Virus record (IMG/VR): IMGVR_UViG_3300042519_004024
Location: 62,001 to 126,000 of that record
Strand: one strand, 5' to 3'
DNA length: 64,000 nt
Below the pieces are notes generated by a model. It made no database searches. It saw only the letters and a program-made list of their open reading frames with translations, and was not told where the DNA came from. A program made the translations under genes and the position numbers. Of this stretch, positions 8,663 to 21,577 are shown one piece after another (position 1 is the stretch's first letter; every line of letters begins with the position of its first letter).

Positions 8663-8664
8663 AA

Positions 8665-8769
8665 CAACGACTCTTCAGCATTCTACTCCCCGCAAATACA
8701 TAAATGTAACACGAAATTGTATCTAATTTAACCCTACGTTGGCGGTACGGGTACTGAAGTTCATCGTTG
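8665..8769 (-). ncRNA. Structured ncRNA candidate between tRNA-Leu and a tRNA-like element
   Basis: Nested helices CAACGAT/GTCGTTG, CTTCAGTA/TGCTGAAG, CCCGTA/TGCGGG. Confidence 0.65.
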
Positions 8770-8854
8770 GTACTCGAAGAGGGACTCGAACCCTCACAAC
8801 CCACTGGTCAACAGAGCTTAAACCTGTCGTGTCTACCAATTCCACCATCCGAGC
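8768..8854 (-). tRNA. tRNA-Leu(TAA)
   Basis: Class II cloverleaf, ACAGG-TTTAAGC-TCTGT, encoded CCA. Confidence 0.93.
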
Positions 8855-8944
8855 ATTTTAAAGAGTTATTTTCTCTTTCTTACCATAAAGATAAACAAAA
8901 CAAATAATACAAATAATATTGGTGTCATAATTTTTTAATTTTTG

Positions 8945-9029
8945 TAGTCAGGACAGGAATCGAACCTGTACTAAACCTGGTATACACCATATTAAATTAG
9001 GAACGTGTTACCAATTACACCACCTGACT
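8945..9029 (-). ncRNA. tRNA-like RNA lacking a canonical anticodon arm
   Basis: Acceptor AGTCAGG/CCTGACT, D arm GTGT-AATTGGTA-ACAC, T arm ACAGG-TTCGATT-CCTGT; centre has TGGT-GTAT-ACCA hairpin. Confidence 0.75.
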
Positions 9030-9041
9030 ATTTTTATTGTG

Positions 9042-9113
9042 CGGTCCATCCGGGAATCGAACCCGAAGCATATCCGTGACAGGGATATATGTTAGCCGTT
9101 ACACCAATGGACC
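9042..9113 (-). tRNA. tRNA-Asp(GTC)
   Basis: TATCC-CTGTCAC-GGATA, G73. Confidence 0.95.
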
Positions 9114-9175
9114 AAAAAACCACATTACAAAACCATAAAGGTACAACTCCTGCGGTTGCGTTGTTCATCATATTG

Positions 9176-9247
9176 TAGTCCGTACGGGAATCGAACCCGT
9201 GACTCTGCCGTGAAAGGGCAGCGACTTAACCCCTTGTCGAACGGACC
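9176..9247 (-). tRNA. tRNA-Glu(TTC)
   Basis: CTGCC-CTTTCAC-GGCAG. Confidence 0.95.
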
Positions 9248-9263
9248 ATCTTATTTGGTATTA

Positions 9264-9295
9264 CAAAGATATGTAAACTGTTTCAATCTACCAAA
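9264..9295 (-). promoter_or_regulatory. Bacteroidota-type promoter for tRNA-Glu onward
   Basis: TTTG-N20-TATCTTTG. Confidence 0.8.
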
Positions 9296-9301
9296 TTTTT
9301 T

Positions 9302-9457
9302 TTACTTTTTTTTGTGGGACCCGCTCCCCACTCTAAACTTGTACTTCGTTCTATTAAGCGTTTTTTTCAGTTTTTTTAACCAATCAGTATTCGTGTTAGT
9401 TTTAACAAATTTAAATCTTCCTGATTCGCAAGTTCCTGATAAAACTTCTCTCATCAT
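9302..9457 (-). CDS. Putative 51-aa basic protein in tRNA array
   Basis: Hand translation MMREVLSGTCESGRFKFVKTNTNTDWLKKLKKTLNRTKYKFRVGSGSHKKK; fills a gap between tRNAs. Confidence 0.45.
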   Translation of the reverse strand: MMREVLSGTCESGRFKFVKTNTNTDWLKKLKKTLNRTKYKFRVGSGSHKKK

Positions 9458-9479
9458 TCATTTGTATTAATTGTTTATT

Positions 9480-9552
9480 TGGTGGACACTGTGGGAATCG
9501 AACCCATACGATCTGATTGCAAATCAGTCGACCTGCCGTCGGCATCAGGCCC
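9480..9552 (-). tRNA. tRNA-Ala(TGC), slightly atypical
   Basis: Loop TTTGCAA centred on TGC; G3:U70 and A73; encoded CCA; irregular acceptor/T junction. Confidence 0.8.
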
Positions 9553-9557
9553 ATTTG

Positions 9558-9629
9558 TGCGGGTAGAATGAATCGAACACTCATCTCCACATTGGAAGTG
9601 TGGAGTAATAACCATTATACGATACCCGC
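9558..9629 (-). tRNA. tRNA-Gly(TCC)
   Basis: CCACA-CTTCCAA-TGTGG. Confidence 0.93.
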
Positions 9630-9633
9630 AAAT

Positions 9634-9849
9634 TGTGACTACTCCGTTGGGATTTGTTTCGTCACTTTATCGTGAATGGGGTGATCAAACCCACTAACAT
9701 CACGGGTGTAAGTTTGTATGTCAAACTATCTCCACAAAACATTAGTTTTTATCTCTAAAACTAAAAAAACGACTTGACACCTTGTAACCCCCCTTTTAAG
9801 TGCGTGTTACCATCCTTTCTCAAGTAGAATATACTGCTTACACTCCCGT
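9634..9849 (-). ncRNA. Two-domain structured ncRNA candidate
   Basis: ACGGG(A)GTGTAAG/CTTACACCCGT closes 9702-9849; inner GTAAC/GTTAC and TAGTTTT/AAAACTA; second domain closed by GTGAT/GTCAC. Confidence 0.6.
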
Positions 9850-9929
9850 ACTGACGGTGGGATTCGAACCCACGTTTTAAACTTACCGCTACAGGCATAG
9901 ATGATATAAGCATCCACTGGTACATCAGC
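9849..9929 (-). ncRNA. tRNA-like RNA with rearranged D/anticodon region
   Basis: Acceptor GCTGATG/CGTCAGT; perfect T arm GTGGG-TTCGAAT-CCCAC; no normal D arm. Confidence 0.65.
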
Positions 9930-9935
9930 ATTTAG

Positions 9936-10007
9936 TTGCGGGGGCAGGATTCGAACCTGCGACCTACGGGTTATGAGCCCGCCGAGCTACCACTGCTCTA
10001 CCCCGCG
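9936..10007 (-). tRNA. tRNA-fMet(CAT)
   Basis: C1xA72 mismatch, GGG/CCC anticodon stem, loop CTCATAA. Confidence 0.95.
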
Positions 10008-10014
10008 ATATTTG

Positions 10015-10089
10015 TGGTGAGGGAATGGAATCGAACCATCGGCACAAGAGTTTTCTGTCTCCTTGCTCTACCTACTGAGCTACCGCACC
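10015..10089 (-). ncRNA. Aberrant tRNA-Phe-like RNA (8-nt anticodon loop)
   Basis: Phe-like body; stem AGGAG/CTCTT with loop ACAGAAAA; extra base and mismatch in acceptor stem. Confidence 0.7.
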
Positions 10090-10090
10090 A

Positions 10091-10275
10091 TAATTTGTGA
10101 TTTAGTAGTTGACTCACACTCTCGTTTCACCATCTTGAGCCAACAGGTTAATGTACTTTACGAGTTTCCCGTTTCTTACAACCACAATATTTTAAAATCA
10201 CTTTCGCCCCCTGTATAGACATACGTCAGATGCTTAAGGTCAGCCTTAACTATTAAGGGAGCCACCCGTGATTTT
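10091..10275 (-). ncRNA. Two structured RNA domains in the leader of tRNA array A
   Basis: AATCAC/GTGATT closing with TTAAGG-CTGA-CCTTAA; TTGTGGTT/AATCACAA closing with GTTGGCTCA/TGAGTCAAC. Confidence 0.55.
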
Positions 10276-10360
10276 TATTTTTAATATTTCAATGAACTTC
10301 TTCTTTCTTCACGGGAGTAGGACACCAACCTCTAACTTCCTACCCCCGTTCTCTGTCTTA

Positions 10361-10392
10361 CAAAGATATGTAATCTATTTTAATTTGCCAAA
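10361..10392 (-). promoter_or_regulatory. Bacteroidota-type promoter of tRNA array A
   Basis: TTTG-N20-TATCTTTG, followed by a 12-bp hairpin at about 10311-10349. Confidence 0.8.
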
Positions 10393-10400
10393 TCTTTTTT

Positions 10401-10748
10401 TTATTTTTTTATAAAGTACTCTTCAACTACGAATTTTCTTCCTTCTTTTTTTAGTACTCCAACAAAATCATCTTCGTGATGAATACCACAATAAAAACCT
10501 GAACCATCATGCCACAAACCACGTTTATTGTTTTTGTAAACGTTTTCACCATCAAACGTGATGTAATCAGGTTGGAATTCCTTTGTAAGGTTTGCCGCTC
10601 TAATCATTTCACGATTTTCAGAAGGGGTATAACTCCCACCAAAATCACTTTTGCAAAGAAACGTCGCCTTTCCAACCACAACTTTCTCTCCGTTGAGTGT
10701 TGCGTTTTTATCAAATTTTTTCTTGTAAGTGTAGATATAAACTCCCAT
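10401..10748 (-). CDS. Hypothetical early protein
   Basis: ATG 10748 preferred because promoter TTTG-N19-TATCTTTG (10765-10795) lies inside the longer ORF. Confidence 0.75.
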   Translation of the reverse strand: MGVYIYTYKKKFDKNATLNGEKVVVGKATFLCKSDFGGSYTPSENREMIRAANLTKEFQPDYITFDGENVYKNNKRGLWHDGSGFYCGIHHEDDFVGVLKKEGRKFVVEEYFIKK

Positions 10749-10833
10749 ATGTTTTTTATTTCTACAAAGATATGTAATCACTTTTGATTTGCAAAATCTT
10801 TTTTAAACTTTTTTTACCAATATGTCAAAGAAC

Positions 10834-10863
10834 AAAAAAACCCACCTCTTTTGGAGATGGGTT
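10834..10863 (-). terminator. Intrinsic terminator / possible attenuator 3:4 hairpin
   Basis: ACCCATCTC-CAAAA-GAGGTGGGT plus T-run. Confidence 0.8.
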
Positions 10864-10888
10864 TCAAAATTTATTATGTATTAAATTA

Positions 10889-10963
10889 TCATACCATCTC
10901 CTTATAGGAACGATCCTCAGCTATCACCAATCCGCCTAATAATATGATATGTAAATTTTTCAT
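10889..10963 (-). CDS. Putative 24-aa leader peptide
   Basis: Hand translation MKNLHIILLGGLVIAEDRSYKEMV; late motif at 10986-10992; 3' end complementary to terminator 5' arm. Confidence 0.55.
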   Translation of the reverse strand: MKNLHIILLGGLVIAEDRSYKEMV

Positions 10964-11022
10964 TTGCGTTTTTATTTGTTTTGTTATAAATATATGATAC
11001 TTTTTAAAAGTGTCAAGTTTTT

Positions 11023-11346
11023 TTAATATTTTCTTCTTGAGTATTTAAAATTTCCGTGTCTCTTTTTGTATGCGTCATAAAATGTTCTACCATACTTTTC
11101 GTCACCAAATAATCTTTTTTTAATGTCTTCAGGTATGTCTTCAAAATTTTCTACTTCACTATATGGATCATAATCAAATTCGTAATAACCAGTATCTTCT
11201 AAGTCCTTATCAAAATATGTGTGCTCACCTTCATCATCAACCCAATGATCAGTATCGCCAAACTTTGCTCTATACTTAGATTCTTTAATGACTTTATTAA
11301 CAATTCTAACTAAATCTGATTCTGTTAGTCTTATAATTTTTTTCAT
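11023..11346 (-). CDS. LTESDL-leader family protein
   Basis: MKKIIRLTESDLVRIVNKVIKES. Confidence 0.85.
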   Translation of the reverse strand: MKKIIRLTESDLVRIVNKVIKESKYRAKFGDTDHWVDDEGEHTYFDKDLEDTGYYEFDYDPYSEVENFEDIPEDIKKRLFGDEKYGRTFYDAYKKRHGNFKYSRRKY

Positions 11347-11355
11347 AATAATCTA

Positions 11356-11868
11356 TTAATATCCATGTTTTTTTGGGTACATTATATGTTCTAAATGAGA
11401 AGTATATTCAAAAGTTAAAACATCAAGTACGTCATTAATTCCATTTTTCATTTTTGAATCCTCTTCAAGTGAGTTATATTCATTTTCATAATAACTTATT
11501 AATTCTTCAAAAAGTTTTCCAATCATATTAATATTTGTTTTCCACAACGTCTTCCATTCTTCTTTTTCGTATTGTGAAAGTTCGTCATATTCAATTTCAT
11601 CATTAAATCTTTTTGATGGTCTTCTAGTGAATTTAGACATGTTTCTTTTTCTCCATAAATCATAATCGTGTTGAATGTCTCCATAACGTAAATAATTTCC
11701 TGGGATATTTTTTTCTATAAGGTAATTATTAAACAAATCTATTAACTCCGTTTTAAATTTTTCAATTTCTTCAGGTGTGATTACTTTATAAATTTCAGAT
11801 ATATTATTTTCTTTAATTACTCGTCTAACAATTCTCGCTAGATCGGATTCTGTAAGTCTATTTCTCAT
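11356..11868 (-). CDS. LTESDL-leader family protein
   Basis: MRNRLTESDLARIVRRVIKEN. Confidence 0.85.
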   Translation of the reverse strand: MRNRLTESDLARIVRRVIKENNISEIYKVITPEEIEKFKTELIDLFNNYLIEKNIPGNYLRYGDIQHDYDLWRKRNMSKFTRRPSKRFNDEIEYDELSQYEKEEWKTLWKTNINMIGKLFEELISYYENEYNSLEEDSKMKNGINDVLDVLTFEYTSHLEHIMYPKKHGY

Positions 11869-11882
11869 TTTTATATTTTTTA

Positions 11883-12497
11883 TTATGCATATTCTTCATC
11901 GTCAAAGTCCTCATACTCATCAAATGGGTCCTCACGCCTTTTTGTTATTATCGTCCCTTCACCATCTATTTTACCACCAGTCCCGAATACGTCTTTTGGT
12001 AATTTTCTATACTTTTCAGGTTTATAATCTTCAGGATATCTTTTTTTTTGTATAAAGTCATCCCAACCTTCACCTAATTCTTCATCTCTTCCTTTTGTTT
12101 TTGCAAATGCTTTTTTCAAATCATTAACTGAGTGTCCTCCAATCGCATCGTATGGTTCGTCCTCATCAACTTTATAGAAACCTTCTTTTTCCATTAAGTA
12201 TTCAATATCGTTAGGCAAATCACCATAACCTTCATCACGTAAAGCCATAACAATATCAAATTCACTCATCAAATTAAGGTCGTGTATATCATATTCACAT
12301 TCATTTTCAAGTATATCTCTTGCCTGTTCAATTAAATCTTGAAGTCTTTCCTCACCTCTATCGGTTTGTCCCCACTCTTCATCATCACTATAGTATGGAT
12401 CATACATACTTCTATCTTTATAGTCGTCGTTTTCTTTAATTACCCGTCTAACAATTCTTGCTAAATCTGATTCTGTTAGTCTTATTATTCTTTTCAT
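11883..12497 (-). CDS. LTESDL-leader family protein, acidic
   Basis: MKRIIRLTESDLARIVRRVIKEN. Confidence 0.85.
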   Translation of the reverse strand: MKRIIRLTESDLARIVRRVIKENDDYKDRSMYDPYYSDDEEWGQTDRGEERLQDLIEQARDILENECEYDIHDLNLMSEFDIVMALRDEGYGDLPNDIEYLMEKEGFYKVDEDEPYDAIGGHSVNDLKKAFAKTKGRDEELGEGWDDFIQKKRYPEDYKPEKYRKLPKDVFGTGGKIDGEGTIITKRREDPFDEYEDFDDEEYA

Positions 12498-12499
12498 TA

Positions 12500-13033
12500 T
12501 TATCTGTTGTTTCTACTTTTATCGGACTTTCCGTAATGGTGTCCTGATTGGTATTTATCATAACCTTTTCTTTTAAACCAAGCGGCGTCTCTAAGAGTAT
12601 TACTCGCTAAAGCATAAACGCCTAAAGCAGCAGCAATTCCCCCACTTATAAACATCGCTGCCGGAACAATTGCTAATGCCGCACCAACTGAACTATAGCC
12701 AATAATTTTATCAATAATACTTCTTATTTCATATTCATTATCACCCATTTCATTTTCATCCTCTTCCGTCAATACAGACTCCAAAGAATCTTTAACTATT
12801 GATTGTAAAGATTCAATACCGTTACTTTCTATAAAATCACGTAACATATCTTGCTCTTCAGGACTCAATTGTTCTGTAGCCTCTTTACTACTTTGTTCCA
12901 ATTCCATTTTTGAAAAATCGACATCCGATTCCATATCTTCAGATTGTGAAATCCATTCTTCTTCGTTTTCTTTAATCACTCGTCTAACAATTCTTGCTAG
13001 ATCAGATTCTGTAAGTCTTATAATTTTTTTCAT
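12500..13033 (-). CDS. LTESDL-leader family protein with hydrophobic hairpin
   Basis: MKKIIRLTESDLARIVRRVIKEN; hydrophobic SSVGAALAIVPAAMFISGGIAAALGVYALA. Confidence 0.85.
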   Translation of the reverse strand: MKKIIRLTESDLARIVRRVIKENEEEWISQSEDMESDVDFSKMELEQSSKEATEQLSPEEQDMLRDFIESNGIESLQSIVKDSLESVLTEEDENEMGDNEYEIRSIIDKIIGYSSVGAALAIVPAAMFISGGIAAALGVYALASNTLRDAAWFKRKGYDKYQSGHHYGKSDKSRNNR

Positions 13034-13063
13034 TATTTTTTTATTTATAAATACTTTGTTATT

Positions 13064-14020
13064 TTAAAAACCAAAGTTTAATCTTAAATCGTCTAATTTA
13101 ATTACCTCGGTAACTTCAACAAAATTATCTTCCATACCAACACTATCTCTTCTATCCTCCATTGTCATCTCATCATCTTCAATATATCTTACATGAATTT
13201 CAAGATTAAATGGAACAATTTCTTCATTTGATTCAATTTCATTAAAATCTTCCACTGAAAAATATTTACCTTCGTATTGACTGAACCCATCTCCAATCAT
13301 TATGTTGAAACTTTTTCTTATATTATACCTGTAATCGTCAGTTTCAACTTCTCCATTTCCATCACAATTACTACAAGTACTTGATCCATACCCATCACAC
13401 CATCCACATTCTTCATCTCCAGCACCTTCACATGATGGACATTCAAAATTACCTGTCCCACCACAATCACTACATCTATCTTCACCGGTTCCATCACAAT
13501 GAACACACTCTACCTCCACTTCAACCTCATCACCTTCATCATCTTCTTCAGTATCGGTTTCACTTCCTCTACCATCACAATAACGACATTCTTCATTACC
13601 TGATCCATCACAAGTATCACAATCTATAGTTGTTTCTCCATCACAACTACGACATTCTCGTCTACCTGACCCATCACAGTGTTCACATTGTTCATCACCT
13701 GAACCGTAACAGTAATCACATTCATTTTTAATTACTTCAGTGTCTTCATACAATTCAATAACTGCAACGTATAGGTTCATTATTATTCCTTCCATTGCAA
13801 CAGGATCCATTTTTCTATTTAAAATAAAATATGTCATAACACATACTTTAATTCTTTCTTGTGTGGAATTGACTTTTGATAATAATAATTCGGCTAAATG
13901 ATCACTTTTTATGATATTTATTATTTTTGAAATACCGATAAATACGTTTCCGTATTCGGTTTTCATTAAATTAGCTAAATTATTAGCTATTGAGTATAAT
14001 TTTTTAAATTCAGGTGACAT
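13064..14020 (-). CDS. Protein with ten CxxCxGxG zinc-finger repeats
   Basis: Ten motifs at 11-aa spacing, 5+5 around an acidic loop; no J domain. Confidence 0.85.
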   Translation of the reverse strand: MSPEFKKLYSIANNLANLMKTEYGNVFIGISKIINIIKSDHLAELLLSKVNSTQERIKVCVMTYFILNRKMDPVAMEGIIMNLYVAVIELYEDTEVIKNECDYCYGSGDEQCEHCDGSGRRECRSCDGETTIDCDTCDGSGNEECRYCDGRGSETDTEEDDEGDEVEVEVECVHCDGTGEDRCSDCGGTGNFECPSCEGAGDEECGWCDGYGSSTCSNCDGNGEVETDDYRYNIRKSFNIMIGDGFSQYEGKYFSVEDFNEIESNEEIVPFNLEIHVRYIEDDEMTMEDRRDSVGMEDNFVEVTEVIKLDDLRLNFGF

Positions 14021-14054
14021 ATAGTATAAATATTAAAATACTATAAAATGTACA

Positions 14055-14372
14055 CTATATTAATTTAATAAGGTCCGTTGGGTAAACTTTTTTTAGTTGG
14101 ATGTCGTATGTTTTTATAAACCAATCTAAAAGTAGGCTATCGGTTTCATAATCAAAAAATGACTTTAATTCATTATATAATTTTAAAGGACAATTTAAAT
14201 CGTCTCCGTAACCAATATGATTAAAATAAAAAAACACAAATTGTTTTTTGTTTTTTGTGTCAACTAAATAAAAGGCAATGAAATCTCCATCACATTTGTG
14301 AAGTAGTTTGAGTTTATTTAACTCAGGTAAAAACATATTAATATAATCTGAAAAAGACTTCTCTAAACTCAT
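14055..14372 (-). CDS. Hypothetical protein
   Basis: ATG 14372 overlaps upstream TGA (ATGA). Confidence 0.65.
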   Translation of the reverse strand: MSLEKSFSDYINMFLPELNKLKLLHKCDGDFIAFYLVDTKNKKQFVFFYFNHIGYGDDLNCPLKLYNELKSFFDYETDSLLLDWFIKTYDIQLKKVYPTDLIKLI

Positions 14373-14674
14373 AACTCTTGTACTTGAATCATAATCCAAT
14401 CAACTTCACCTTCAGTTAGGTTACCAAGTACGTCTTCAGTTATATGAGTATTGTATGTAATTTCCCATTCATTTTCATTTCCATGCAGCACGGCAACTTC
14501 CCATTCATTTTCATCTGAAGTATATGACGCATACCTAAACCCTTTTTCAGATATAGGACTTGGTATTTTAAACCTTACAACAGATAATCCATATCCATTA
14601 GGAAAAAATATTAATCCGTGTTGCCCATCAAATGTTGGGTGTGGTTTAAATACAATATCCTTAAATGATTTCAT
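14369..14674 (-). CDS. Hypothetical phage protein
   Basis: ORF track; TAATG coupling to upstream small ORF. Confidence 0.75.
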   Translation of the reverse strand: MKSFKDIVFKPHPTFDGQHGLIFFPNGYGLSVVRFKIPSPISEKGFRYASYTSDENEWEVAVLHGNENEWEITYNTHITEDVLGNLTEGEVDWIMIQVQEL

Positions 14675-14826
14675 TACGCGAAAGTTTTTTTATGTTTTGT
14701 TTTTCTAGTATAAAGGTTTTTTGGTTTTTCAACACGAGCAACAAATCTACCATCAAAAAATCCCGCATCTAATTGATCTTTTCTGATTTGAGTTCTTTTT
14801 ACTTTATGTTGATCGTACGTCTTCAT
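14674..14826 (-). CDS. ArfA-like ribosome-rescue factor candidate, 50 aa
   Basis: Hand translation MKTYDQHKVKRTQIRKDQLDAGFFDGRFVARVEKPKNLYTRKTKHKKTFA; promoter 14842-14872; TAATG coupling. Not in ORF track. Confidence 0.55.
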   Translation of the reverse strand: MKTYDQHKVKRTQIRKDQLDAGFFDGRFVARVEKPKNLYTRKTKHKKTFA

Positions 14827-14841
14827 CTCATTTATTTTTTA

Positions 14842-14872
14842 CAAAGATATAAATATTTTATTATATACCAAA
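14842..14872 (-). promoter_or_regulatory. Bacteroidota-type promoter
   Basis: TTTG-N19-TATCTTTG. Confidence 0.8.
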
Positions 14873-14879
14873 TTTTTTG

Positions 14880-14953
14880 TACCTCCGGCAGGACTCGAAC
14901 CTGCAAAATTCACTTTCTAAGAGTGACGTGTATACCTATTCCACCACGAAGGC
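14880..14953 (-). tRNA. tRNA-Leu(TAG) with short variable loop
   Basis: TCACT-CTTAGAA-AGTGA, A73; variable region only ATTTT. Confidence 0.88.
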
Positions 14954-14964
14954 ATTTATTTATG

Positions 14965-15036
14965 AGCTCAGGGAGGGATTCGAACCCACATACTACGGTT
15001 TTGCAGACCGAGACTTTACCAATCAGACACCTGAGC
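14965..15036 (-). tRNA. tRNA-Cys(GCA)
   Basis: TCGGT-CTGCAAA-ACCGT, U73. Confidence 0.9.
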
Positions 15037-15038
15037 AA

Positions 15039-15494
15039 TTAACGGCAGTGATGGTCTGCCGCTCTTGTTGCAATTTGATTGTCAGGTTTAATATTTGCTT
15101 TATAACCTAACGACGTTGCCCACCCAACAACGGGTTGTACAAGTTTTGAACTAAAGTGTTTTTCTTCACAGTTATAATCCAAATCTATTTCAACCTTAAC
15201 TTTTACTTTTTGAGTTAACCATTCGGCAACCTCGATTGAATAATCAGCTTCATTCCAAAGACGTGTCCATTTGTCTTTTATTTTTTTCACTTTTTGTTTG
15301 TGTAGGATGTAGTGAACACCTCTGTTTCCGTATCTGTATGCTATCACTGTAACATATACGGTACTTCTTCTATGGTTTTGTGAATCCGTTCCAATATGTA
15401 TTTCAGCCCATGGACATTCCTTTAAAACATCTAAGGTGTGTTTTACCACATCAGGGATTGCTTCACCATTAATTGTTCTAAATACTCTGTTCAT
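15039..15494 (-). CDS. RNase H-like YkuK-family protein
   Basis: IHIGTDSQ, RLWNEAD, EIDLDYN, ATRAAD acidic motifs. Confidence 0.85.
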   Translation of the reverse strand: MNRVFRTINGEAIPDVVKHTLDVLKECPWAEIHIGTDSQNHRRSTVYVTVIAYRYGNRGVHYILHKQKVKKIKDKWTRLWNEADYSIEVAEWLTQKVKVKVEIDLDYNCEEKHFSSKLVQPVVGWATSLGYKANIKPDNQIATRAADHHCR

Positions 15495-15505
15495 TATTTC
15501 TACTT

Positions 15506-15643
15506 TTATTTACTTATCAAAAAATAAGTAATAAGAATTTGAGCAATCACGGCAATTATTCTTGCTATTGTTCTTGCTAATGTCATTCGATTTTTCCAAC
15601 CTTCCAACCTTTCTTCAAATGTTGGTTTAACATTTTCATCCAT
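15506..15643 (-). CDS. Small membrane protein, 45 aa
   Basis: MDENVKPTFEERLEGWKNRMTLARTIARIIAVIAQILITYFLISK; start moved to ATG 15643 to avoid tRNA-Phe. Confidence 0.6.
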   Translation of the reverse strand: MDENVKPTFEERLEGWKNRMTLARTIARIIAVIAQILITYFLISK

Positions 15644-15656
15644 ACTATTTTTTTTG

Positions 15657-15732
15657 TGGAACCATAGGGAGTCGAACCCTAACCTCTGGATTTTCAGTCC
15701 AGCGTGACACACCACACTTACACCATAGTTCC
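15657..15732 (-). tRNA. tRNA-Phe(GAA)
   Basis: CTGGA-CTGAAAA-TCCAG. Confidence 0.92.
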
Positions 15733-16227
15733 TTATTTAACTTCAAATGCAAATTTAATCACACGTTTCTTTTTTACCGCATCATCCCAATTACCAATAA
15801 CAACACCATCTTTAATTGTGAATGCGTGTCTTGAAACAAGGATGAAGAATGTCCCAACAGGATTTTGTTTTGCAAAAGTACCAACAGTCATTTCTCGTTT
15901 AGTTACAACACCCTTAGTTTTAACTTCGTACTTTAAACTGTACATCCCCATAGTACTTTTAGTACCCATACATTTAACTTTCTTGTAGTTAATCTGTCTT
16001 CTATCTTCGGCGATTTGTTTCATTTTTAAAACAGTACCATAAGTCCCCTCACGATCTTTACGTCCAAAGTTCTCTTTAACATATTTGTGAGCGTAGTCAT
16101 ATGAAACCCCAAATGAAGATGCAAATGCTCTAACAACACAATCATTCTTCTCTCCTCTTGCGATAGGTGATTCAGCATACCCCTTAATCGCTTCTTTCGT
16201 CGTACAATATGGTAATCCTTCTTTCAT
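15733..16227 (-). CDS. Conserved phage protein, possible Cys-His peptidase-like fold
   Basis: EKNDCVVRAFA and SRHAFTIKDG; ATG 16227. Confidence 0.65.
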   Translation of the reverse strand: MKEGLPYCTTKEAIKGYAESPIARGEKNDCVVRAFASSFGVSYDYAHKYVKENFGRKDREGTYGTVLKMKQIAEDRRQINYKKVKCMGTKSTMGMYSLKYEVKTKGVVTKREMTVGTFAKQNPVGTFFILVSRHAFTIKDGVVIGNWDDAVKKKRVIKFAFEVK

Positions 16228-16274
16228 ACTGTAAAGATACAAAAACTTTTTTAATTGGCAAAATTAAAAATTAG

Positions 16275-16345
16275 CGCGCCCCCAAGGTTTCGAACCCTGA
16301 CCGATGGGTTTGGAATCCATCATGCTACCATTACACCAGAGACGC
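16275..16345 (-). tRNA. tRNA-Trp(CCA)
   Basis: Loop TTCCAAA, G73. Confidence 0.9.
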
Positions 16346-16382
16346 AAGTTGTCCGACCTAGCTCGGAACCGACATCGGATTG

Positions 16383-16455
16383 TACCCCCTCAGAGATTCG
16401 AACTCCGACCTGACACCTTAGAAGAGTGTTGTACTTCCAATTATACGAAAGGGGC
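16383..16455 (-). tRNA. tRNA-Arg(TCT)
   Basis: ACACT-CTTCTAA-GGTGT. Confidence 0.92.
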
Positions 16456-16460
16456 AAATA

Positions 16461-16631
16461 AAAGATGATGAATGACTTTATCAGGAATCCCGCTACTTCT
16501 ATCAAAGCTTCACACACCATTAGAGAGTTGGGTTGTTACATCAATACAATTAAGATTGAATACCTATCCTTAGTTTGTACCCTTGCGACACGTCTCTCCA
16601 CGCTTATCATTCTACGCTTCTTATCATCTTT
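16461..16631 (-). ncRNA. 171-nt rod-like ncRNA candidate (6S-like shape)
   Basis: AAAGATGAT/ATCATCTTT, GAATGAT/GTCATTC, AAGC/GCTT, TGGAGAG/CTCTCTA; bounded by two tRNA-Arg genes. Confidence 0.65.
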
Positions 16632-16633
16632 TG

Positions 16634-16706
16634 TACCTTCGGCGAGATTCAAACTCACATCTTGCGGGTCGTAACCGCAGGTTCTATTCTATTTAACTAC
16701 GAAGGT
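16634..16706 (-). tRNA. tRNA-Arg(ACG), variant D and T loops
   Basis: TGCGG-TTACGAC-CCGCA; D loop lacks GG; T loop TTTGAAT. Confidence 0.85.
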
Positions 16707-16710
16707 ATAA

Positions 16711-16802
16711 ATAGTTCTGGTCAACCACTCGCCACCCACCTCAGGGAATAAAGGGAATACCACCCTATACTTTGAGCCTAAGCCTTGTCCGTTGTGAACT
16801 AT
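16711..16802 (-). ncRNA. 92-nt structured ncRNA candidate
   Basis: ATAGTTC/GAACTAT closing stem, CAAC/GTTG, CTCA/TGAG, AGGG/CCCT; between His and Arg tRNAs. Confidence 0.5.
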
Positions 16803-16805
16803 TTG

Positions 16806-16879
16806 TGTGTATGATGGGGGTCGAACCCATGACCTCTTGAACCACAATCAAGCACTCTACCAACTGAGCTACATACACC
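16806..16879 (-). tRNA. tRNA-His(GTG)
   Basis: CTTGA-TTGTGGT-TCAAG; encoded G-1 opposite A73. Confidence 0.92.
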
Positions 16880-16884
16880 ATATT

Positions 16885-16954
16885 GTCCCGTGTAATGGTA
16901 TCGAACCACTCTAAAGTCGGATATGAGCCAACTTTGATCCCTGATCACACGGGA
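16885..16954 (-). tRNA. Non-canonical CAT tRNA with 8-bp acceptor and 8-bp anticodon stems (elongator Met candidate)
   Basis: TCCCGTGT/ACACGGGA; mini D arm ATC-AGG-GAT; AAAGTTGG-CTCATAT-CCGACTTT; T arm AGTGG-TTCGATA-CCATT. Confidence 0.7.
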
Positions 16955-16958
16955 GTTG

Positions 16959-17047
16959 AGGAAAACAGTGGTAACGATCCACAATCGGTTTCTCACCGAT
17001 CACATTGTTTAGCAAACAAGTCCCGTCGCCTTCAGGGATTACTTTCC
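16959..17047 (-). tRNA. tRNA-Ser(GCT)
   Basis: Loop TTGCTAA; variable arm ATCGGT/ACCGAT; T loop ATCGTTA; U73. Confidence 0.85.
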
Positions 17048-17106
17048 ATAGAGTGTGGTAGGACTGCAGTTCCTTGGGGATCCCACACTATTTATTCCCC
17101 TTTTTG

Positions 17107-17179
17107 TGTTCACGACGGGTTACGATCCCATTACCTCCGACGTATCAGATCGGCGCTCTACCAATTGAGCTACGTGAAC
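17107..17179 (-). tRNA. tRNA-Ile(GAT)
   Basis: CCGAT-CTGATAC-GTCGG; T loop ATCGTAA. Confidence 0.92.
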
Positions 17180-17185
17180 TTATCG

Positions 17186-17258
17186 CGGACAAGGAAGGGT
17201 ACGATCCTACAACCTATCGGTTAACAGCCGATTGCTCTACCAATTGAGCTACTTGTCC
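17186..17258 (-). tRNA. tRNA-Asn(GTT)
   Basis: ATCGG-CTGTTAA-CCGAT, G73; T loop ATCGTAC. Confidence 0.92.
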
Positions 17259-17262
17259 ATTG

Positions 17263-17348
17263 TGGTGGGAGAGGAGGGACTCGAACCCCCAAGGTCTTTC
17301 GACGACAGATTTACAGTCTGCTGAGCCAACCAATTGCTCAACTCTCCC
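17263..17348 (-). tRNA. tRNA-Tyr(GTA)
   Basis: GCAGA-CTGTAAA-TCTGT, variable arm, encoded CCA. Confidence 0.95.
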
Positions 17349-17354
17349 AGTTTA

Positions 17355-17477
17355 GGAAAGGGGAAGATGGTTCTGTGGACATCCCCTTTTATGATTGGCG
17401 TTACTATGACAGTTAAAACTCCGACATAACCACGACTACTGACACGTTAACGTTATATCATTCCCCAATCAACCTTT
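17355..17477 (-). ncRNA. Structured ncRNA candidate between tRNA-Val and tRNA-Tyr
   Basis: TGATTGG/CCAATCA domain then AAAGGGGATG/CATCTTCCCCTTT hairpin. Confidence 0.5.
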
Positions 17478-17478
17478 G

Positions 17479-17552
17479 TACACCCTACAGGGATCGAACC
17501 TGTGACCTGTTGTATGTAAAACAACCGCTACTACCAGCTGAGCTAAAGGTGC
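17479..17552 (-). tRNA. tRNA-Val(TAC)
   Basis: GTTGT-TTTACAT-ACAAC. Confidence 0.92.
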
Positions 17553-17554
17553 GT

Positions 17555-17770
17555 TTATGATGTTATCATTTTAATACTTTCAATTGTGGTAGAGTACATT
17601 CCTTGTTCAATGTAAGGTTTACTATCTTTTAATAGTTTCAAAACAATTTCTGTTGCCTCGTTTTCGGTTTTACCTTGTTTAACCAATCTTACGATTGCTT
17701 TTTCACATTCTTCACCAACCTTAACCATTCCACTTGGAAGTCCTTTTTTAATCTTCTCTACTTTTTTCAT
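17555..17770 (-). CDS. Hypothetical early protein
   Basis: 71 aa directly after promoter TTTG-N19-TATCTTTG (17775-17805). Confidence 0.7.
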   Translation of the reverse strand: MKKVEKIKKGLPSGMVKVGEECEKAIVRLVKQGKTENEATEIVLKLLKDSKPYIEQGMYSTTIESIKMITS

Positions 17771-17813
17771 AGTACAAAGATAATACTTTTTTTTAATCTA
17801 CCAAATTTTTTTG

Positions 17814-17888
17814 TGATCCCGGTGAGGCTCGAACTCACGACCCCTCCATTAAAAGTGGAGTGCTCTAAACCAACTGAGCTACGAGATC
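17814..17888 (-). tRNA. tRNA-Lys(TTT)
   Basis: CTCCA-CTTTTAA-TGGAG. Confidence 0.95.
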
Positions 17889-17948
17889 TTCTGTTTGTCA
17901 TTCTTGTCACTTTCCATGTTACTTGTTTTTAATTGTTTATTTATTTAG

Positions 17949-18022
17949 TCTAAGTGGCAGGGATCGAACCTGCGGCCTGATGCTCCCAAAGCACCCGCTC
18001 TTCCAAACTGAGCTACACCTAG
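17949..18022 (-). tRNA. tRNA-Pro(TGG)
   Basis: GGTGC-TTTGGGA-GCATC; C1:G72. Confidence 0.95.
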
Positions 18023-18028
18023 TTATTG

Positions 18029-18117
18029 TGGAGGAAGAAGTAGGTGTCGATCCCAATACCCGCAAAGGTACCGCCCGTTTTCAAGACGGGGTCACAAGCC
18101 GTTGTGATTCATCTTCC
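18029..18117 (-). tRNA. tRNA-Ser(TGA)
   Basis: CCCGT-CTTGAAA-ACGGG; variable arm; T loop ATCGACA; U73; encoded CCA. Confidence 0.87.
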
Positions 18118-18123
18118 TTATTG

Positions 18124-18195
18124 TTGTTCCCCAAGGGTTCGAACCTCGATTCCATGGACCAAAACCATGTGTCCTGCCGATTAGACGAGGGAACA
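18124..18195 (-). tRNA. tRNA-Gln(TTG)
   Basis: CATGG-TTTTGGT-CCATG. Confidence 0.93.
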
Positions 18196-18238
18196 TTAAT
18201 GAAGCCAATATGTCAAAGAACTTTTTCTTTTTTGTTTG

Positions 18239-18311
18239 AGGTTCCTATCAGGTTCGAACTGATGACTCCGGGTTACAAAGCCGGGATATTACCAAACTAT
18301 ACTAAGGAACC
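18239..18311 (-). tRNA. tRNA-Thr(TGT)
   Basis: Loop TTTGTAA, C31xC39 mismatch, U73. Confidence 0.88.
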
Positions 18312-18324
18312 AAATTTTTGGGTA

Positions 18325-18357
18325 TAAAAAAACCCGAACTTTTTGGGTTCGGGTCTT
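18325..18357 (-). terminator. Intrinsic terminator / possible attenuator before tRNA array B
   Basis: ACCCGAACC-CAAAA-AGTTCGGGT plus T-run. Confidence 0.8.
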
Positions 18358-18388
18358 ATATTTCTTTTATATTTTTAGTTAATCTCTA

Positions 18389-18499
18389 TCAACTCATAAA
18401 TGAAAATGCCCTAACTCGCGACTTAAGCGTACGATACACATTGAACGACCACTGAATGCTCGGGTTACAAATGTTCATATGTCTATTAGTTGTTTTCAT
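18389..18499 (-). CDS. Putative 36-aa leader peptide
   Basis: Hand translation MKTTNRHMNICNPSIQWSFNVYRTLKSRVRAFSFMS; late motif 18506-18512; several GC-rich codons (TCG, CGA, AGG, ACG, CCG). Confidence 0.55.
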   Translation of the reverse strand: MKTTNRHMNICNPSIQWSFNVYRTLKSRVRAFSFMS

Positions 18500-18617
18500 C
18501 TTGTTATAAATATATCGTTATTTCTAAAAGTTTTAATTCTTATACAAATTTAGTTATTTTTTTCTATTTGAAAAGTGTTTTATTGTTTTTTTTATATTTA
18601 TTTAAAAAATATTTCTT

Positions 18618-20003
18618 GTGGTAGAAAAAAAGGCTTTAAATGAAGAATTAAAAAGAATTAAACAATTAATGGTATATGATATGAATTACCATAATTCTAA
18701 AATTTATGAGGATGTTGTCACATCTTCTAAAGTCGGTCAATGTAAAATTACCCCAAATCCAATTCAGGAAAATGAGGTTGCGATTATCTCCTTTGATAAA
18801 AACAAATCACAATTTAGAGTTGGTATGAAATTATTTTTTGGATCCGCTAAAACTGAAACTCAATTAAAAAATGGTTTTGATAAACTCATTAATTTAATTT
18901 TACAATACCCTGATCTTGATGAGGGAATAAAAAATAAAATTAAAAGTGGTGAATTTGCTTTAGGTATACCTACAGTATTAAATGTTATTGGGTCGGCAAG
19001 TAGCGTAAGGGGGGTTCCTGTTATGCCAACAATAACTAATAATAAAGCATCAACAAAAATTACATCAATTAACGTCAATTCTTTTGCGTCAAATATTAAT
19101 AGAACCGCAGATAATTACAAAACACTTAAAGATGATGAAATTAATAACGGATATGCCACAGGACGTATACAAACAATAACTGATTTTATAAAGTCAGGAA
19201 AATTAACAAAAATACAGTCAGGTATGGATGTTGAGGTTAAAAACAATGTTGCGGTTATTACCGATACGGGTGGTTGTGACGATGAGCATAGAAATACCGA
19301 CATATACCCAAATGCTGGACAATTTGCTCTTTTGGATATGTATGTCACTTTATCTAAAAAAATAATTGTCGCCACTAACCCATCAACTTGTATTAATAAG
19401 TTGACAATTAAAATTGGTTATGATAAAGATCTTGCAACTACTGAACTTCAAAAACACGAGTGTGATTTTGGAATTTTTAATGTATATGCAAATGATGTTT
19501 TTGTTAAAACTATTAATTTAAATAATTATGTTTTTGATACCGGTTTAAGAACTAGAGAAACTAATGTTGATGGATTAAAAATAACTGATTTTACTGAAGG
19601 TAGGGAATCTGATGGGTTAACTGGAGGTACTAGATTTTATACCATAACAATAAACCAAAATGATAAGTTATGGAATGATATTATGGCAAACGCACCTAAA
19701 TTTGGTAACCATATTATGTTATCATATAAAGGTTTCCCTAGCGCTTGGTACGCCGGTAAGAAGATTTACGCCCAAGGAGCTAGAAACAGTAAAACACTTG
19801 GACCAGCAAAAAAATGGGATGGTAGTGATGCAGAATCACATGCGTCAGCAGTTTATTTAGATATTACTCTTTATAGAAAAGATAAAACAAAGGACAATAT
19901 TAAAGGTTGGACAACAGCAACTGCAAGAGGTGTTCAAATGATTACAATTGCTGACTTAACACCTTGTTCAAAATCTAGTGATAAGAGAATAGTAATATCT
20001 TAA
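18618..20003 (+). CDS. Hypothetical late protein, probable virion-associated
   Basis: 461 aa; leader ALNEELKRIKQLM; TATTTAT at 18595-18601. Confidence 0.75.
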   Translation: MVEKKALNEELKRIKQLMVYDMNYHNSKIYEDVVTSSKVGQCKITPNPIQENEVAIISFDKNKSQFRVGMKLFFGSAKTETQLKNGFDKLINLILQYPDLDEGIKNKIKSGEFALGIPTVLNVIGSASSVRGVPVMPTITNNKASTKITSINVNSFASNINRTADNYKTLKDDEINNGYATGRIQTITDFIKSGKLTKIQSGMDVEVKNNVAVITDTGGCDDEHRNTDIYPNAGQFALLDMYVTLSKKIIVATNPSTCINKLTIKIGYDKDLATTELQKHECDFGIFNVYANDVFVKTINLNNYVFDTGLRTRETNVDGLKITDFTEGRESDGLTGGTRFYTITINQNDKLWNDIMANAPKFGNHIMLSYKGFPSAWYAGKKIYAQGARNSKTLGPAKKWDGSDAESHASAVYLDITLYRKDKTKDNIKGWTTATARGVQMITIADLTPCSKSSDKRIVIS

Positions 20004-20127
20004 TTTTTTTTATTACTATAATGTATTTGTTCTTCCTCTAATCTACGTAAAAAAACGTAGTATTCTTCCGATTCTATAAATTCATTGTGGATTAATTCTA
20101 ATATTTCTTCCATTACTATTGTGTTAG

Positions 20128-20201
20128 TGATCCGCTCAGGATTCGAACCTGAGACCTACTGCTTAGAAGGCAGTTGCTCTATCCAGCTGAGCTAGCGGAC
20201 C
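20128..20201 (-). tRNA. tRNA-Arg(TCT), second isolated gene
   Basis: ACTGC-CTTCTAA-GCAGT; canonical cloverleaf. Confidence 0.95.
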
Positions 20202-20207
20202 ATATTA

Positions 20208-20393
20208 TTAGATTTTTTTTACCTCGTAAACGTGTCCCGAATCTGAGTTGGTTTGAAAAATATCTTTCATTTCTTCAGCCTCTTCTTTGGTTTCAAACTC
20301 CCACACTTCAGTATCACTGTTTAAAAGAATTACAGGTACTTTCTTACTTCGGTTATTTGAATTCACGCTTACGTGTTTAACTATTACGTACAT
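20208..20393 (-). CDS. Hypothetical protein
   Basis: ATG 20393; TATATTTG at 20408-20415. Confidence 0.7.
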   Translation of the reverse strand: MYVIVKHVSVNSNNRSKKVPVILLNSDTEVWEFETKEEAEEMKDIFQTNSDSGHVYEVKKI

Positions 20394-20474
20394 ATCTTTG
20401 TTTTTAACAAATATAATAAATAAAAATCCCCCAGTCAATAATGAAAGGGGGAATATTTCTTTGATTTTATTTTA

Positions 20475-20777
20475 TTACCTTCCGATAATCAATTCATTAA
20501 AATCAATGTCATTTGCACCTTTTATTTTACCCTCAAGTTCATCGTACATATAAGATTTAACTACCGATGTTACTGACTGTTCCGCTTGTGCAATTTTTGT
20601 TTCCATCCAATCTTCAAGCTCTTCACCATCTTCCATTAATTCCCACATTTTATAGCAAAGTGTTGCCATTGTAAACAATTGTTGTTTAGCCATGTAAGAA
20701 CCATCTTGATCGCTTTCCTTAAGGATTTTAACCATTCGTTCCAATTGTTTTTCTGTTATTATCACTTTTTTACTCAT
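20475..20777 (-). CDS. Leader-family acidic protein
   Basis: MSKKVIITEKQLERMVKILKES from ATG 20777. Confidence 0.8.
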   Translation of the reverse strand: MSKKVIITEKQLERMVKILKESDQDGSYMAKQQLFTMATLCYKMWELMEDGEELEDWMETKIAQAEQSVTSVVKSYMYDELEGKIKGANDIDFNELIIGR

Positions 20778-21577
20778 ACCGCCTTTGTTGTACATCCTAC
20801 TTTAATACACATCTTTATTGCTATTGAATCACAGTACTTGAAATCTTGTCCTGGACCTGGCATACAATTTACAAATTCAGGACACTTAAATACGTCTTTA
20901 CCTCCAACATTCCAATAACATTGGTTAACTTTGCCGTCTTTATTTATATAATTGTTATCAATTTTATCATCACTTTTTTTTGCGTTATTCATAATACATT
21001 CCATAAACCCTGGATAATTAGGAACCGGATTTGCAAATAAGTATTTTTGCATACAGTATTTTACTTCCTCACAATCAAATTGATTGACGTAATCTTGTTT
21101 TGTTTTTTCATCATCAACGTATCTTTCTTGATTATTATCATCATAATCATCACAATTACATTGCGGTAAATCGATACATCCTTCTTCTTCTAACGCCTTT
21201 AATGTGTTGTAACCAACTTTACCATCAACAGTCAATCCATTGTTTTTTTGGAACTCTTTAACCGCATCTCTTGTATGTTGTCTAAATTTTCCGTCACAAC
21301 TATTTTTATCTTTGGCACAACCGGTATTCATTCCTCCACCTTCATACTTAATGTTGTAACCACATTTAGATAATGCGTGTTGGATTTCTTTAACAACGTC
21401 ACCGTTTGATCCGTATGCTGCCATTTTTCGTTTACAAATAATATCACATAACTCATCACCTTCTTGTATTATACCATACTCATAAGCCTCATTAAGGTGT
21501 TGGGTTTTTGTTGCATAGGTATGCATGTTAATTATTCGTTTCTTTTCTTCTTCAGTTATAATAAAACTTTTATTCAT
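20774..21577 (-). CDS. Leader-family protein with peptidoglycan-binding domain and Cys-rich C-terminus
   Basis: MNKSFIITEEEKKRII; GSNGDVVKEIQHAL...AVKEFQKNNGLTVDGKVGYNTLKAL. Confidence 0.85.
   Translation of the reverse strand: MNKSFIITEEEKKRIINMHTYATKTQHLNEAYEYGIIQEGDELCDIICKRKMAAYGSNGDVVKEIQHALSKCGYNIKYEGGGMNTGCAKDKNSCDGKFRQHTRDAVKEFQKNNGLTVDGKVGYNTLKALEEEGCIDLPQCNCDDYDDNNQERYVDDEKTKQDYVNQFDCEEVKYCMQKYLFANPVPNYPGFMECIMNNAKKSDDKIDNNYINKDGKVNQCYWNVGGKDVFKCPEFVNCMPGPGQDFKYCDSIAIKMCIKVGCTTKAV

Follow-up and report, generated by a model that had tools for sequence, protein, structure and literature searches.

On the minus strand of the window (the whole stretch of DNA that was analysed, 64,000 nt), a short leader ORF and an intrinsic terminator separate a promoter from a run of tRNA genes, and on balance we think it probable that this arrangement, unit 2, leads a phage tRNA operon and controls it by ribosome-dependent transcription attenuation. 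The window belongs to a genome that forms a single contig of 213,924 bp with 30.8% G+C and that recurs in many lake and river metagenomes. All 24 tRNA genes called by ARAGORN lie on the minus strand, at 8.3–20.2 kb of the window. A DNA search of GenBank phages with this region and with both of its leader units returned tRNA matches only or none, and no cultured phage resembled the region.

Bacteroidota sigma-A promoters consist of a TTTG-like −33 element and a TAnnTTTG −7 box about 19 nt apart. In a promoter scan, the form TTTG, 19 nt, TAtcTTTG was recurrent in the window, and the architecture of the unit 2 promoter was shared with six other promoters there. Because of these repeated promoters, and because one protein of the genome contains an SprB repeat, the genome points to a host that probably belongs to the Bacteroidota.

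The unit 2 module and its inheritance

The features of unit 2 and of the tRNA genes behind it are the following.

18545..18575, minus strand: promoter, with −33 element CTTT (18575-18572), a 19-nt spacer and −7 box TAAATTTG (18552-18545)
18500..18540, minus strand: conserved 5′ leader of ∼40 nt, with the box AAAACTTTTAGAAATAACGATATATTTATAAC that includes a 15-mer at 18517-18503
18389..18499, minus strand: leader ORF of 36 codons plus TGA, MKTTNRHMNICNPSIQWSFNVYRTLKSRVRAFSFMS, its frame open in 35 of 35 distinct nucleotide variants
18458..18465, minus strand: ACCCGAGC, codons 12-14 (AAC CCG AGC), a near copy of the terminator 5′ arm that is complementary to the 3′ arm
18400..18415, minus strand: ORF-end segment GTTAGGGCATTTTCAT, codons 29-34, in which GTTAGGG partly matches the terminator 5′ arm and TTTTCAT complements ATGAAAA
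18326..18357, minus strand: intrinsic terminator, stem AAGACCCGAAC/GTTCGGGTTTT, loop CCAAAAA, U-tract 18331-18326
17813..18311, minus strand: putatively gated tRNA run (ARAGORN, Rfam)
18311-18238, minus strand: tRNA-Thr(TGT), standard ARAGORN and Rfam call
18206..18221, minus strand: 16-mer TTCTTTGACATATTGG, conserved in the spacer and located 8-12 nt before the 5′ end of a tRNA
18195-18123, minus strand: tRNA-Gln(TTG), standard ARAGORN and Rfam call
18117-18029, minus strand: tRNA-Ser(TGA)-like, called at a relaxed ARAGORN threshold only
18022-17948, minus strand: tRNA-Pro(TGG), standard ARAGORN and Rfam call
17888-17813, minus strand: tRNA-Lys(TTT), standard ARAGORN and Rfam call
17775..17811, minus strand: next canonical promoter, TTTG, 19 nt, TATCTTTG, which would close the unit 2-dependent stretch in this genome

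A preliminary description of this DNA had placed the unit at 18325-18512, and its elements do lie there on the minus strand, but the true promoter falls outside that interval (−33 element at 18575-18572, −7 box at 18552-18545). Transcription is predicted to start near 18540. Because the true promoter is farther upstream, the 15-mer ATATATTTATAACAA (plus strand TTGTTATAAATATAT) lies in the 5′ UTR of unit 2; in the paralogous unit 1, at 10.9 kb, the −7 box falls inside this 15-mer. The context common to both units that had been noticed is genuine, the 15-mer having exactly two copies in the 213,924-bp genome, at 18517-18503 and 10995-10981, and a scan of viral contigs for it gave chance AT-rich matches only. 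The 5′ leader of unit 2 is homologous to the unit 1 promoter, with the −33 element degenerate, and some relatives have a 7-nt insertion (AAAACAA) between its box and the ATG. The −33 element of unit 2 itself is CTTT in the window and CTTG in relatives, and across 46 distinct variants the features of a Bacteroidota sigma-A promoter are found (CTTG, 19 nt, TAnnTTTG), with the spacing and the −7 box kept (nn being AA, TA, CA or TC) and with unrelated sequence farther upstream.

The strong terminator that had been read behind the ORF was recovered as a hairpin ACCCGAAC/GTTCGGGT followed by T7, at 18354-18326, with a folding energy of −13.4 kcal/mol. The 14.5-kb tRNA region has no strong minus-strand terminators other than this one and that of unit 1. 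As in an attenuator, the unit 2 terminator stands between the leader ORF and the tRNA genes, its stem 34 nt past the stop codon and its U-tract 14 nt before the start of tRNA-Thr. In accordance with the preliminary description, our scan found no TAnnTTTG between the terminator and tRNA-Thr (18311), the nearest same-strand boxes being 18552-18545 upstream and 17782-17775 downstream. The short ORF thus lies, as attenuator leaders do, in the 5′ leader of the same predicted transcript as the tRNAs, with no promoter between them. Across the variants, 99.2% of the cells of the terminator stem are paired and seven double changes occur, and none of 500 shuffles equalled the real alignment in pairing or in covariation; the arms are found as CCCTAAC/GTTAGGG, CCCAAAC/GTTTGGG, CCCGAGA/TCTCGGG and CCCGAGAT/ATCTCGGG. 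The predicted terminator is hereby shown, at the level of aligned variants, to be under structural selection with compensatory changes.

Five tRNAs had been placed behind the terminator. Those for Thr, Gln, Pro and Lys are standard calls, whereas Ser(TGA) appears only at the relaxed ARAGORN threshold, and a gated run of five holds for this genome but not for relatives that have a longer unbroken tRNA run. The 16-mer TTCTTTGACATATTGG in the first spacer occurs exactly twice in the genome, once per unit, and its 62 occurrences across loci are mostly between tRNA-Thr and the next tRNA or before tRNA-Leu(TAA). It was considered as a promoter and rejected, since there is no −7 box at the right distance and the motif stands 8-12 nt before tRNAs.

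To place unit 2 among its relatives, an exhaustive HMMER search with the leader peptide was used; it returned a 36-aa homologue at 78% identity, called in another assembly (locus L136), and a 145-aa protein, P0018, that was set aside as an apparently spurious repeat match. Conserved stretches from the comparison of the window with L136 then served as search patterns and gave 57 further loci in viral and metagenome collections, and later more, so that the comparison overall comprises about 100 related sequences, with the unit 2 module in about 60 freshwater metagenome loci. In these loci the promoter, the ORF, the hairpin with its U-tract and tRNA-Thr stand at fixed spacing, with tRNA-Thr(TGT) 73-81 nt past the stop codon in practically all loci that extend far enough, and with Gln, (Ser), Pro, Lys, Val, Tyr and others next in order. 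Upstream, the distance to the tRNA-Arg gene ranges between 70 and 5,057 nt, with different genes in between. Since the promoter, the ORF frame, the terminator and the tRNA-Thr junction are kept against a changing upstream context, it is shown, as far as these alignments can trace descent, that the promoter, the leader ORF, the terminator and the array head are inherited as one module. The 461-aa gene that neighbours unit 2 in the window failed as a synteny anchor: relatives at ≤84% identity have other upstream genes, with no tRNAs. Its homologues reach down to 49% identity, and because only near-identical contigs have the unit upstream, the gene is, to judge by this distribution, an insertion between tRNA-Arg and unit 2.

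The 36-aa ORF that had been proposed is present as 36 codons at 18499-18389, and its length stays at 35-37 aa among 35 distinct variants, with a pN/pS of 0.40-0.50. All indels inside it are multiples of 3, whereas indels in the flanking non-coding and spacer sequence are of 1-2 nt. The frame kept in 35/35 variants, the in-frame indels and the pN/pS of 0.4-0.5 are evolutionary signs of translation, and they support the view that the leader ORF evolves as a translated coding frame. A non-coding small RNA as the sole reading of this GC-rich patch, whose fold has a z-score of −2.8, was rejected for the same kept frame and purely in-frame indels. The codons had been called GC-rich and unusual for this DNA, and indeed, against 36-codon windows of the phage's genes, their usage ranks in the bottom 2% and their GC3 in the top 1.5%. 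CCG makes up 8.6% of Pro codons and AGC 1.8% of Ser codons; in the leader, CCG13 is invariant and AGC14 is found in 29/30 variants. Because synonymous changes occur at several of the ‘rare’ codons (TCG27 to TCA; all four Thr codons used at Thr15), the variants show that rare codons as such are apparently not what is conserved; Arg23, likewise, is CGT or AGA. Codons 28-29 are hypervariable, and an absence of D, E and G from the peptide was dropped as a rule, as D and G occur at these two codons in some variants. That the peptide's own sequence is conserved may mean that it has a separate function, which counts against attenuation.

Many freshwater metatranscriptomes contain a 219-nt stretch of unit 2. 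Contigs assembled from RNA libraries span 18261-18595, several of them ending at 18326-18333, on the U-tract, and in three separate runs the U-tract is crossed into tRNA-Thr (18088-18484, 18261-18358 and 18282-18373). These contigs, which are unstranded and come from assemblies that hairpins break, agree with partial termination. Some extend upstream of the predicted start site, to 18581-18595, which counts against attenuation. The adjacent 461-aa gene has zero RNA-library contig coverage. This pattern bears on the proposal that the terminated 215-nt transcript or the basic 36-aa peptide is itself the functional product, as a trans-acting small RNA or an RNA-binding peptide, with its position before the tRNAs incidental synteny. 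A transcript present in many metatranscriptomes where the neighbouring gene is absent, a leader and 3′ UTR conserved as much as the ORF, and the fold z-score all suit this proposal, for which rnTrpL and peTrpL provide a precedent (PMC6614838, PMC7968998). The same proposal is compatible with attenuation as well, however, and it leaves unexplained the invariant tRNA-Thr junction amid upstream recombination and the match of leader content to tRNA content described below; together with the lack of any matching Rfam family, this makes it, in our judgement, very improbable.

Candidate switch pairings in unit 2 and unit 1

If unit 2 is an attenuator, part of its leader would be expected to compete with the terminator, and two such pairings had been proposed. 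The first is real at the level of predicted base pairing: ACCCGAGC can form a duplex with the 3′ arm of −13.9 to −14.1 kcal/mol, p ≤0.003 against shuffles (≤1/300), at the same site throughout the main clade. ACCCGAGC is made of the rare codons CCG and AGC, and by analogy the unit 2 ORF is like the leaders of known attenuators in carrying an apparent copy of the terminator 5′ arm. The second pairing, of GTTAGGG partly with the 5′ arm, did not rise above chance: in the main clade, including the window, GTTAGGG (18415-18409) showed no excess over shuffled controls, and the helix has an A × G mismatch in 36/42 variants, being Watson-Crick in L136/L163, L172 and L154. Nor did any upstream segment in the main clade, again including the window, beat shuffles in pairing with the 5′ arm (p about 0.3-0.4). 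In the antiterminator test of the window's own unit 2, therefore, the complement of the 5′ arm was at chance level and only the ACCCGAGC : 3′ arm duplex was significant. In the divergent L139/L140 clade, the homologous ORF end carries a significant complement of the 5′ arm, 7 to 10 bp long. The ORF-end segment also contains TTTTCAT, the exact complement of the start region ATGAAAA, and in the consensus fold the start region AUGAAAA is paired with UUUUCAU in codons 32-34. A purely thermodynamic switch in unit 2 was rejected, since in equilibrium folding the terminator has a probability of at least 0.98 under every ribosome mask.

The paralogous unit 1 has the following features.

10987..11017, minus strand: promoter, CTTG 11017-11014, a 19-nt spacer and TATATTTA at 10994-10987
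10889..10963, minus strand: leader ORF of 24 codons plus TGA, MKNLHIILLGGLVIAEDRSYKEMV, 22-24 aa in all variants
10894..10901, minus strand: candidate antiterminator 5′ strand GGAGATGG, last ORF codons, perfectly complementary over 8 bp to the terminator 5′ arm CCATCTCC at 10860-10853
10834..10864, minus strand: terminator AAACCCATCTC/GAGGTGGGTTT followed by T7, with the 16-mer next at 10832-10817

Alignment and folding together show unit 1 to be the clearest case, with a predicted antiterminator that co-varies under the last codons of the ORF. Its promoter is kept in the five relatives aligned, and the −7 box region in most of the 25 variants of A5; the 25 ORF variants collected have in-frame indels and synonymous changes. 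The antiterminator folds at −13.1 kcal/mol versus −14.9 for the terminator, and for the nascent RNA its predicted probability is 0.945, falling to 0 once a ribosome occupies the stop codon. In the antiterminator helix 94.8% of cells are paired and 0/500 shuffles reach the observed values, support equal to that of the terminator. All three partners are altered jointly in a second haplotype, becoming GGAGAGGG, CCCTCTCC and AGAGGGG, at the cost of a Met-to-Arg change in the peptide, and in five variants a U-A pair becomes G-C together with the 3′ arm. Unit 1 has two alternative predicted hairpins only, with no anti-antiterminator. In most relatives its terminator is followed by tRNA-Leu(TAA) and a second array; in the window, a promoter and a 126-aa gene are inserted after the terminator. 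Because a strong promoter of its own follows unit 1 in this genome, the attenuator is not always needed, which counts against attenuation.

An unregulated alternative treats unit 2 as a small protein gene of the usual kind, with its own promoter and a terminator that leaks without regulation. Read-through at a constant rate would then supply the tRNAs, and the hairpin would do no more than fix a ratio or shield the 3′-end of the small mRNA once RNase P has cut at tRNA-Thr. The conserved peptide with its pN/pS of 0.4-0.5, the main clade without a significant antiterminator, the terminator predicted to be stable in all conditions and the contigs that cross it are all as this alternative would have them. 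It leaves unexplained, however, the co-varying antiterminator of unit 1, one change in which costs a Met-to-Arg replacement, as well as the rare-codon copy of the 5′ arm in the unit 2 ORF and the existence of three unrelated leader peptides that mirror their arrays. A hairpin that only stabilizes RNA would, moreover, need no conserved U-tract. For these reasons we hold the unregulated alternative to be unlikely.

Leader content and the proposed mechanism

The content of the leader peptides was compared with that of the tRNA arrays in tests that are post hoc, made after the pattern had been noticed, on variants that are mostly close relatives and hence on few independent cases; with this reading, the unit 2 peptide holds all 15 amino acids of its array (T, Q, S, P, K, V, Y, N, I, H, R, W, F, C, L), as do 0.27% of 36-residue windows of the phage proteome. 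In-set residues account for 32/35 (P = 0.0099) and residues of the second array are depleted (P = 0.0019). All 15 are kept in 28/29 peptide variants, including the L139/L140 peptide despite its much diverged sequence. In unit 1, residues 4-17 are almost only L, I, G, A/V, E and D, with the core LHIILLGGL(A/V)IAED, and they match the second tRNA cluster (Leu-TAA, Met, Ile-TAT, Gly, Ala, Glu, Asp); the content of the two units differs by a Fisher test at p = 0.0097. A third leader, at locus L258, has the run W-S-S-R-W-S-R-S followed by a terminator and a Ser(TGA)-like tRNA, and farther along its array come Ser(TGA), Ser(GCT), Ser(GGA), Arg(CCT) and Trp, with four Ser tRNAs in all; 11/26 of its residues are in the Ser/Arg/Trp set (P = 4.6e-5). 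The leader's AGA codons fall outside what the downstream Arg(CCT) tRNA can decode, which counts against attenuation, and a scan for relatives of the L258 leader found none. These comparisons support the view that leader amino-acid content mirrors the downstream tRNAs in three separate leaders, those of unit 2, unit 1 and L258. Leader codons that correspond to the regulated product are likewise found in known attenuators, here by post-hoc tests on few independent cases.

The content match is also what weighs against a ribosome-dependent attenuator that senses global translation capacity (transcription-translation coupling, ribosome availability or early host shut-off) and not particular tRNAs. 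Such a sensor would fit unit 1, in which two hairpins with no anti-antiterminator mean that any ribosome lag gives read-through, and unit 2, whose leader has no run of one codon; known leader ORFs do respond to general ribosome stalling (PMC12121999, PMC6310831). The contents of the leaders, though, differ by unit and follow the arrays, by the Fisher test and by the L258 figure given above, and a general sensor needs none of this. A sensor of global capacity therefore seems to us quite unlikely.

Under the favoured reading, that of an attenuator responsive to tRNA supply, host RNA polymerase would start at the Bacteroidota-type promoter (−7 box 18552-18545), transcribe the 40-nt leader and then the 36-codon ORF, and arrive at the intrinsic terminator, 14 nt short of tRNA-Thr. 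The tRNAs for Thr, Gln, Ser, Pro and Lys, or the longer array in relatives, would be made solely by polymerases that pass it. The leader ORF would be translated, its codons sampling the amino acids of the downstream tRNAs. A leading ribosome that keeps pace would let the terminator form; when cognate tRNAs are scarce, the ribosome would lag, an alternative RNA fold would form and the polymerase would pass. We infer that read-through at unit 2 is regulated, what its antiterminator would be, and that tRNA supply would be the signal. With 34 nt between stop codon and stem, a ribosome that terminates is out of reach of the terminator, which counts against attenuation. The initial proposal of a tRNA-supply sensor that switches on the phage tRNAs therefore stands in part: the inherited module, the coding ORF, the terminator, the content match and the unit 1 antiterminator argue for it, but the GTTAGGG helix is at chance level and the terminator probability stays at 0.98 or above.

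More broadly, and quite tentatively, phage tRNA arrays may carry ‘codon-sampler’ attenuators that gauge the host tRNA pool codon by codon, such that the phage's own tRNAs are transcribed only as needed; the two units and L258 would be the first members of a wider class. If so, the pool being gauged might fail after host shut-off or after cleavage by anticodon nucleases. For decades there has been debate over the reason that phages have tRNA genes and over the control of these genes, with roles proposed in codon compensation, in the replacement of degraded host tRNAs and in escape from tRNA-cleaving defences (PMC10264068). If unit 2 works as proposed, its leader ORF would be a built-in gauge of the tRNA pool that tests the codons served by its own array, and it would be the first known attenuator controlling tRNA genes. 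It would extend leader-peptide attenuation to Bacteroidota phages and to a many-codon sensor, and would make the debated role of phage tRNAs directly testable by reporter fusions.

Comparison with known systems

No attenuator of tRNA genes came up in the literature searched, including that on phage T5. Phage T5 is alike in that promoters, very short ORFs and tRNA genes are interleaved in its tRNA cluster; it is unlike unit 2 in that the small ORFs abut tRNAs (T5.070 ends 5 nt before tRNA-Cys) and no terminator or attenuation is annotated. With small ORFs that abut tRNAs and no terminators, it was rejected as a precedent.

T-box riboswitches likewise couple the state of tRNA to read-through of an intrinsic terminator, but they bind uncharged tRNA directly and use no ORF, and the T-box covariance model had no match in an Rfam scan of 7500-21500. 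No T-box is known to control tRNA genes. In other leaders, a ribosome stalled on a short upstream ORF remodels the RNA so that polymerase reads on (PMC6310831, PMC10314930, PMC12121999). The ermK, msrD, hflXr/lmo0919, vmlR and toiL-topAI leaders share this logic of termination relieved by stalling, though toiL differs in acting through Rho. In these stalling sensors the signal is a ribosome-bound antibiotic and the targets are resistance or toxin genes, whereas in unit 2 there is no drug and the targets are tRNAs.

Unit 2 also shares its logic with the attenuators of amino-acid operons. The Rfam model Thr_leader (RF00506) scores 29.5 bits at 18323-18409 against a gathering threshold of 55 (E = 0.039), a match driven by the terminator, and unit 2 is not a member of that family. 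Unit 2 differs from amino-acid operon attenuators in that phage tRNAs are regulated here and not biosynthetic enzymes, in its Bacteroidota-type promoter, and in a leader that covers about 15 amino acids, each represented once or a few times, with no single-residue run. Like trpL, hisL, thrL, leuL and pheL, it has a promoter-proximal short ORF and a terminator before the genes to be regulated, and, as in those operons, leader codons match the regulated product and a copy of a terminator arm lies upstream. In trpL, too, the start region is sequestered by a distal segment after transcription.

Leader codons and RNA-library contigs at unit 2

In unit 2, the leader/terminator unit that precedes tRNA-Thr, two adjacent codons of the leader ORF stand out:

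18409-18417, minus strand: hypervariable codons 28-29 of the unit 2 leader ORF

Codon 28 encodes R, H, Q, G, D, Y or K among the variants and codon 29 encodes V, I, S, N or D, and the reading frame is always kept. The two codons adjoin the leader segment that partially matches the 5′ arm of the unit 2 terminator.

Upstream of the leader, contigs from RNA libraries extend 40-55 nt beyond the predicted transcription start site of unit 2, to window positions 18581-18595, past which their sequence departs from that of the window. These extensions may reflect read-through from upstream tRNA-Arg units in relatives, or they may reflect DNA carry-over.

The tRNA region and its inserted genes

Comparison of the window with related contigs (L136, L133, L173) shows a mosaic tRNA region, in which one gene of the window lies between tRNA-Arg and unit 2:

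18618-20003, plus strand: 461-aa gene

L136 is without this gene, and there 70 nt lie between tRNA-Arg and the leader ATG. Other genes are inserted among the tRNAs of the relatives, for instance a 180-aa HTH/sigma70_r4-like ORF in L133, and the inserted genes are probably insertions of the homing-endonuclease type. Short conserved sequence and atypical genes also accompany the tRNAs:

18206-18221 and 10817-10832, minus strand: conserved 16-mer TTCTTTGACATATTGG
8388-8461, 8944-9029, 10014-10089, 9848-9929 and 8579-8653, minus strand: tRNA-like genes, called tRNA-???, with 6- or 8-nt anticodon loops

The 16-mer occurs 62 times across the loci, 8-12 nt from a tRNA 5′ end and on its upstream side, and the tRNA that follows is Gln, the Ser-like tRNA or Leu-TAA. 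In some relatives a canonical promoter precedes the 16-mer, which is therefore transcribed, and it may act as a processing signal. As for the tRNA-like genes, one in the window is called with a CTA anticodon at a relaxed threshold, and relatives (L164, L190) have Pyl(cta) and Stop(tta) tRNA calls.

Other genes and a clue to the host

Four further features of the window are protein-coding:

3996-6116, minus strand: 707-aa phage protein with GAF, PAS and histidine-kinase ATPase domains (PHROG ‘kinase’)
11023-13033, minus strand: tandem array of four paralogues (107, 170, 204 and 177 aa)
13064-14020, minus strand: 318-aa ORF in which a Cys-rich 33-nt repeat (families D1 and D6) occurs eight times
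60041-61639, minus strand: 533-aa protein with a SprB repeat

A sensor kinase is an unusual gene for a phage. The tandem paralogues, which found no match in the PHROG comparison, all share a 78-nt conserved 5′ end (family D3), and the 318-aa ORF had no family match. The SprB repeat is a motif of gliding-motility adhesins in Bacteroidota, and its presence in the 533-aa protein fits the host assignment drawn from the promoters.
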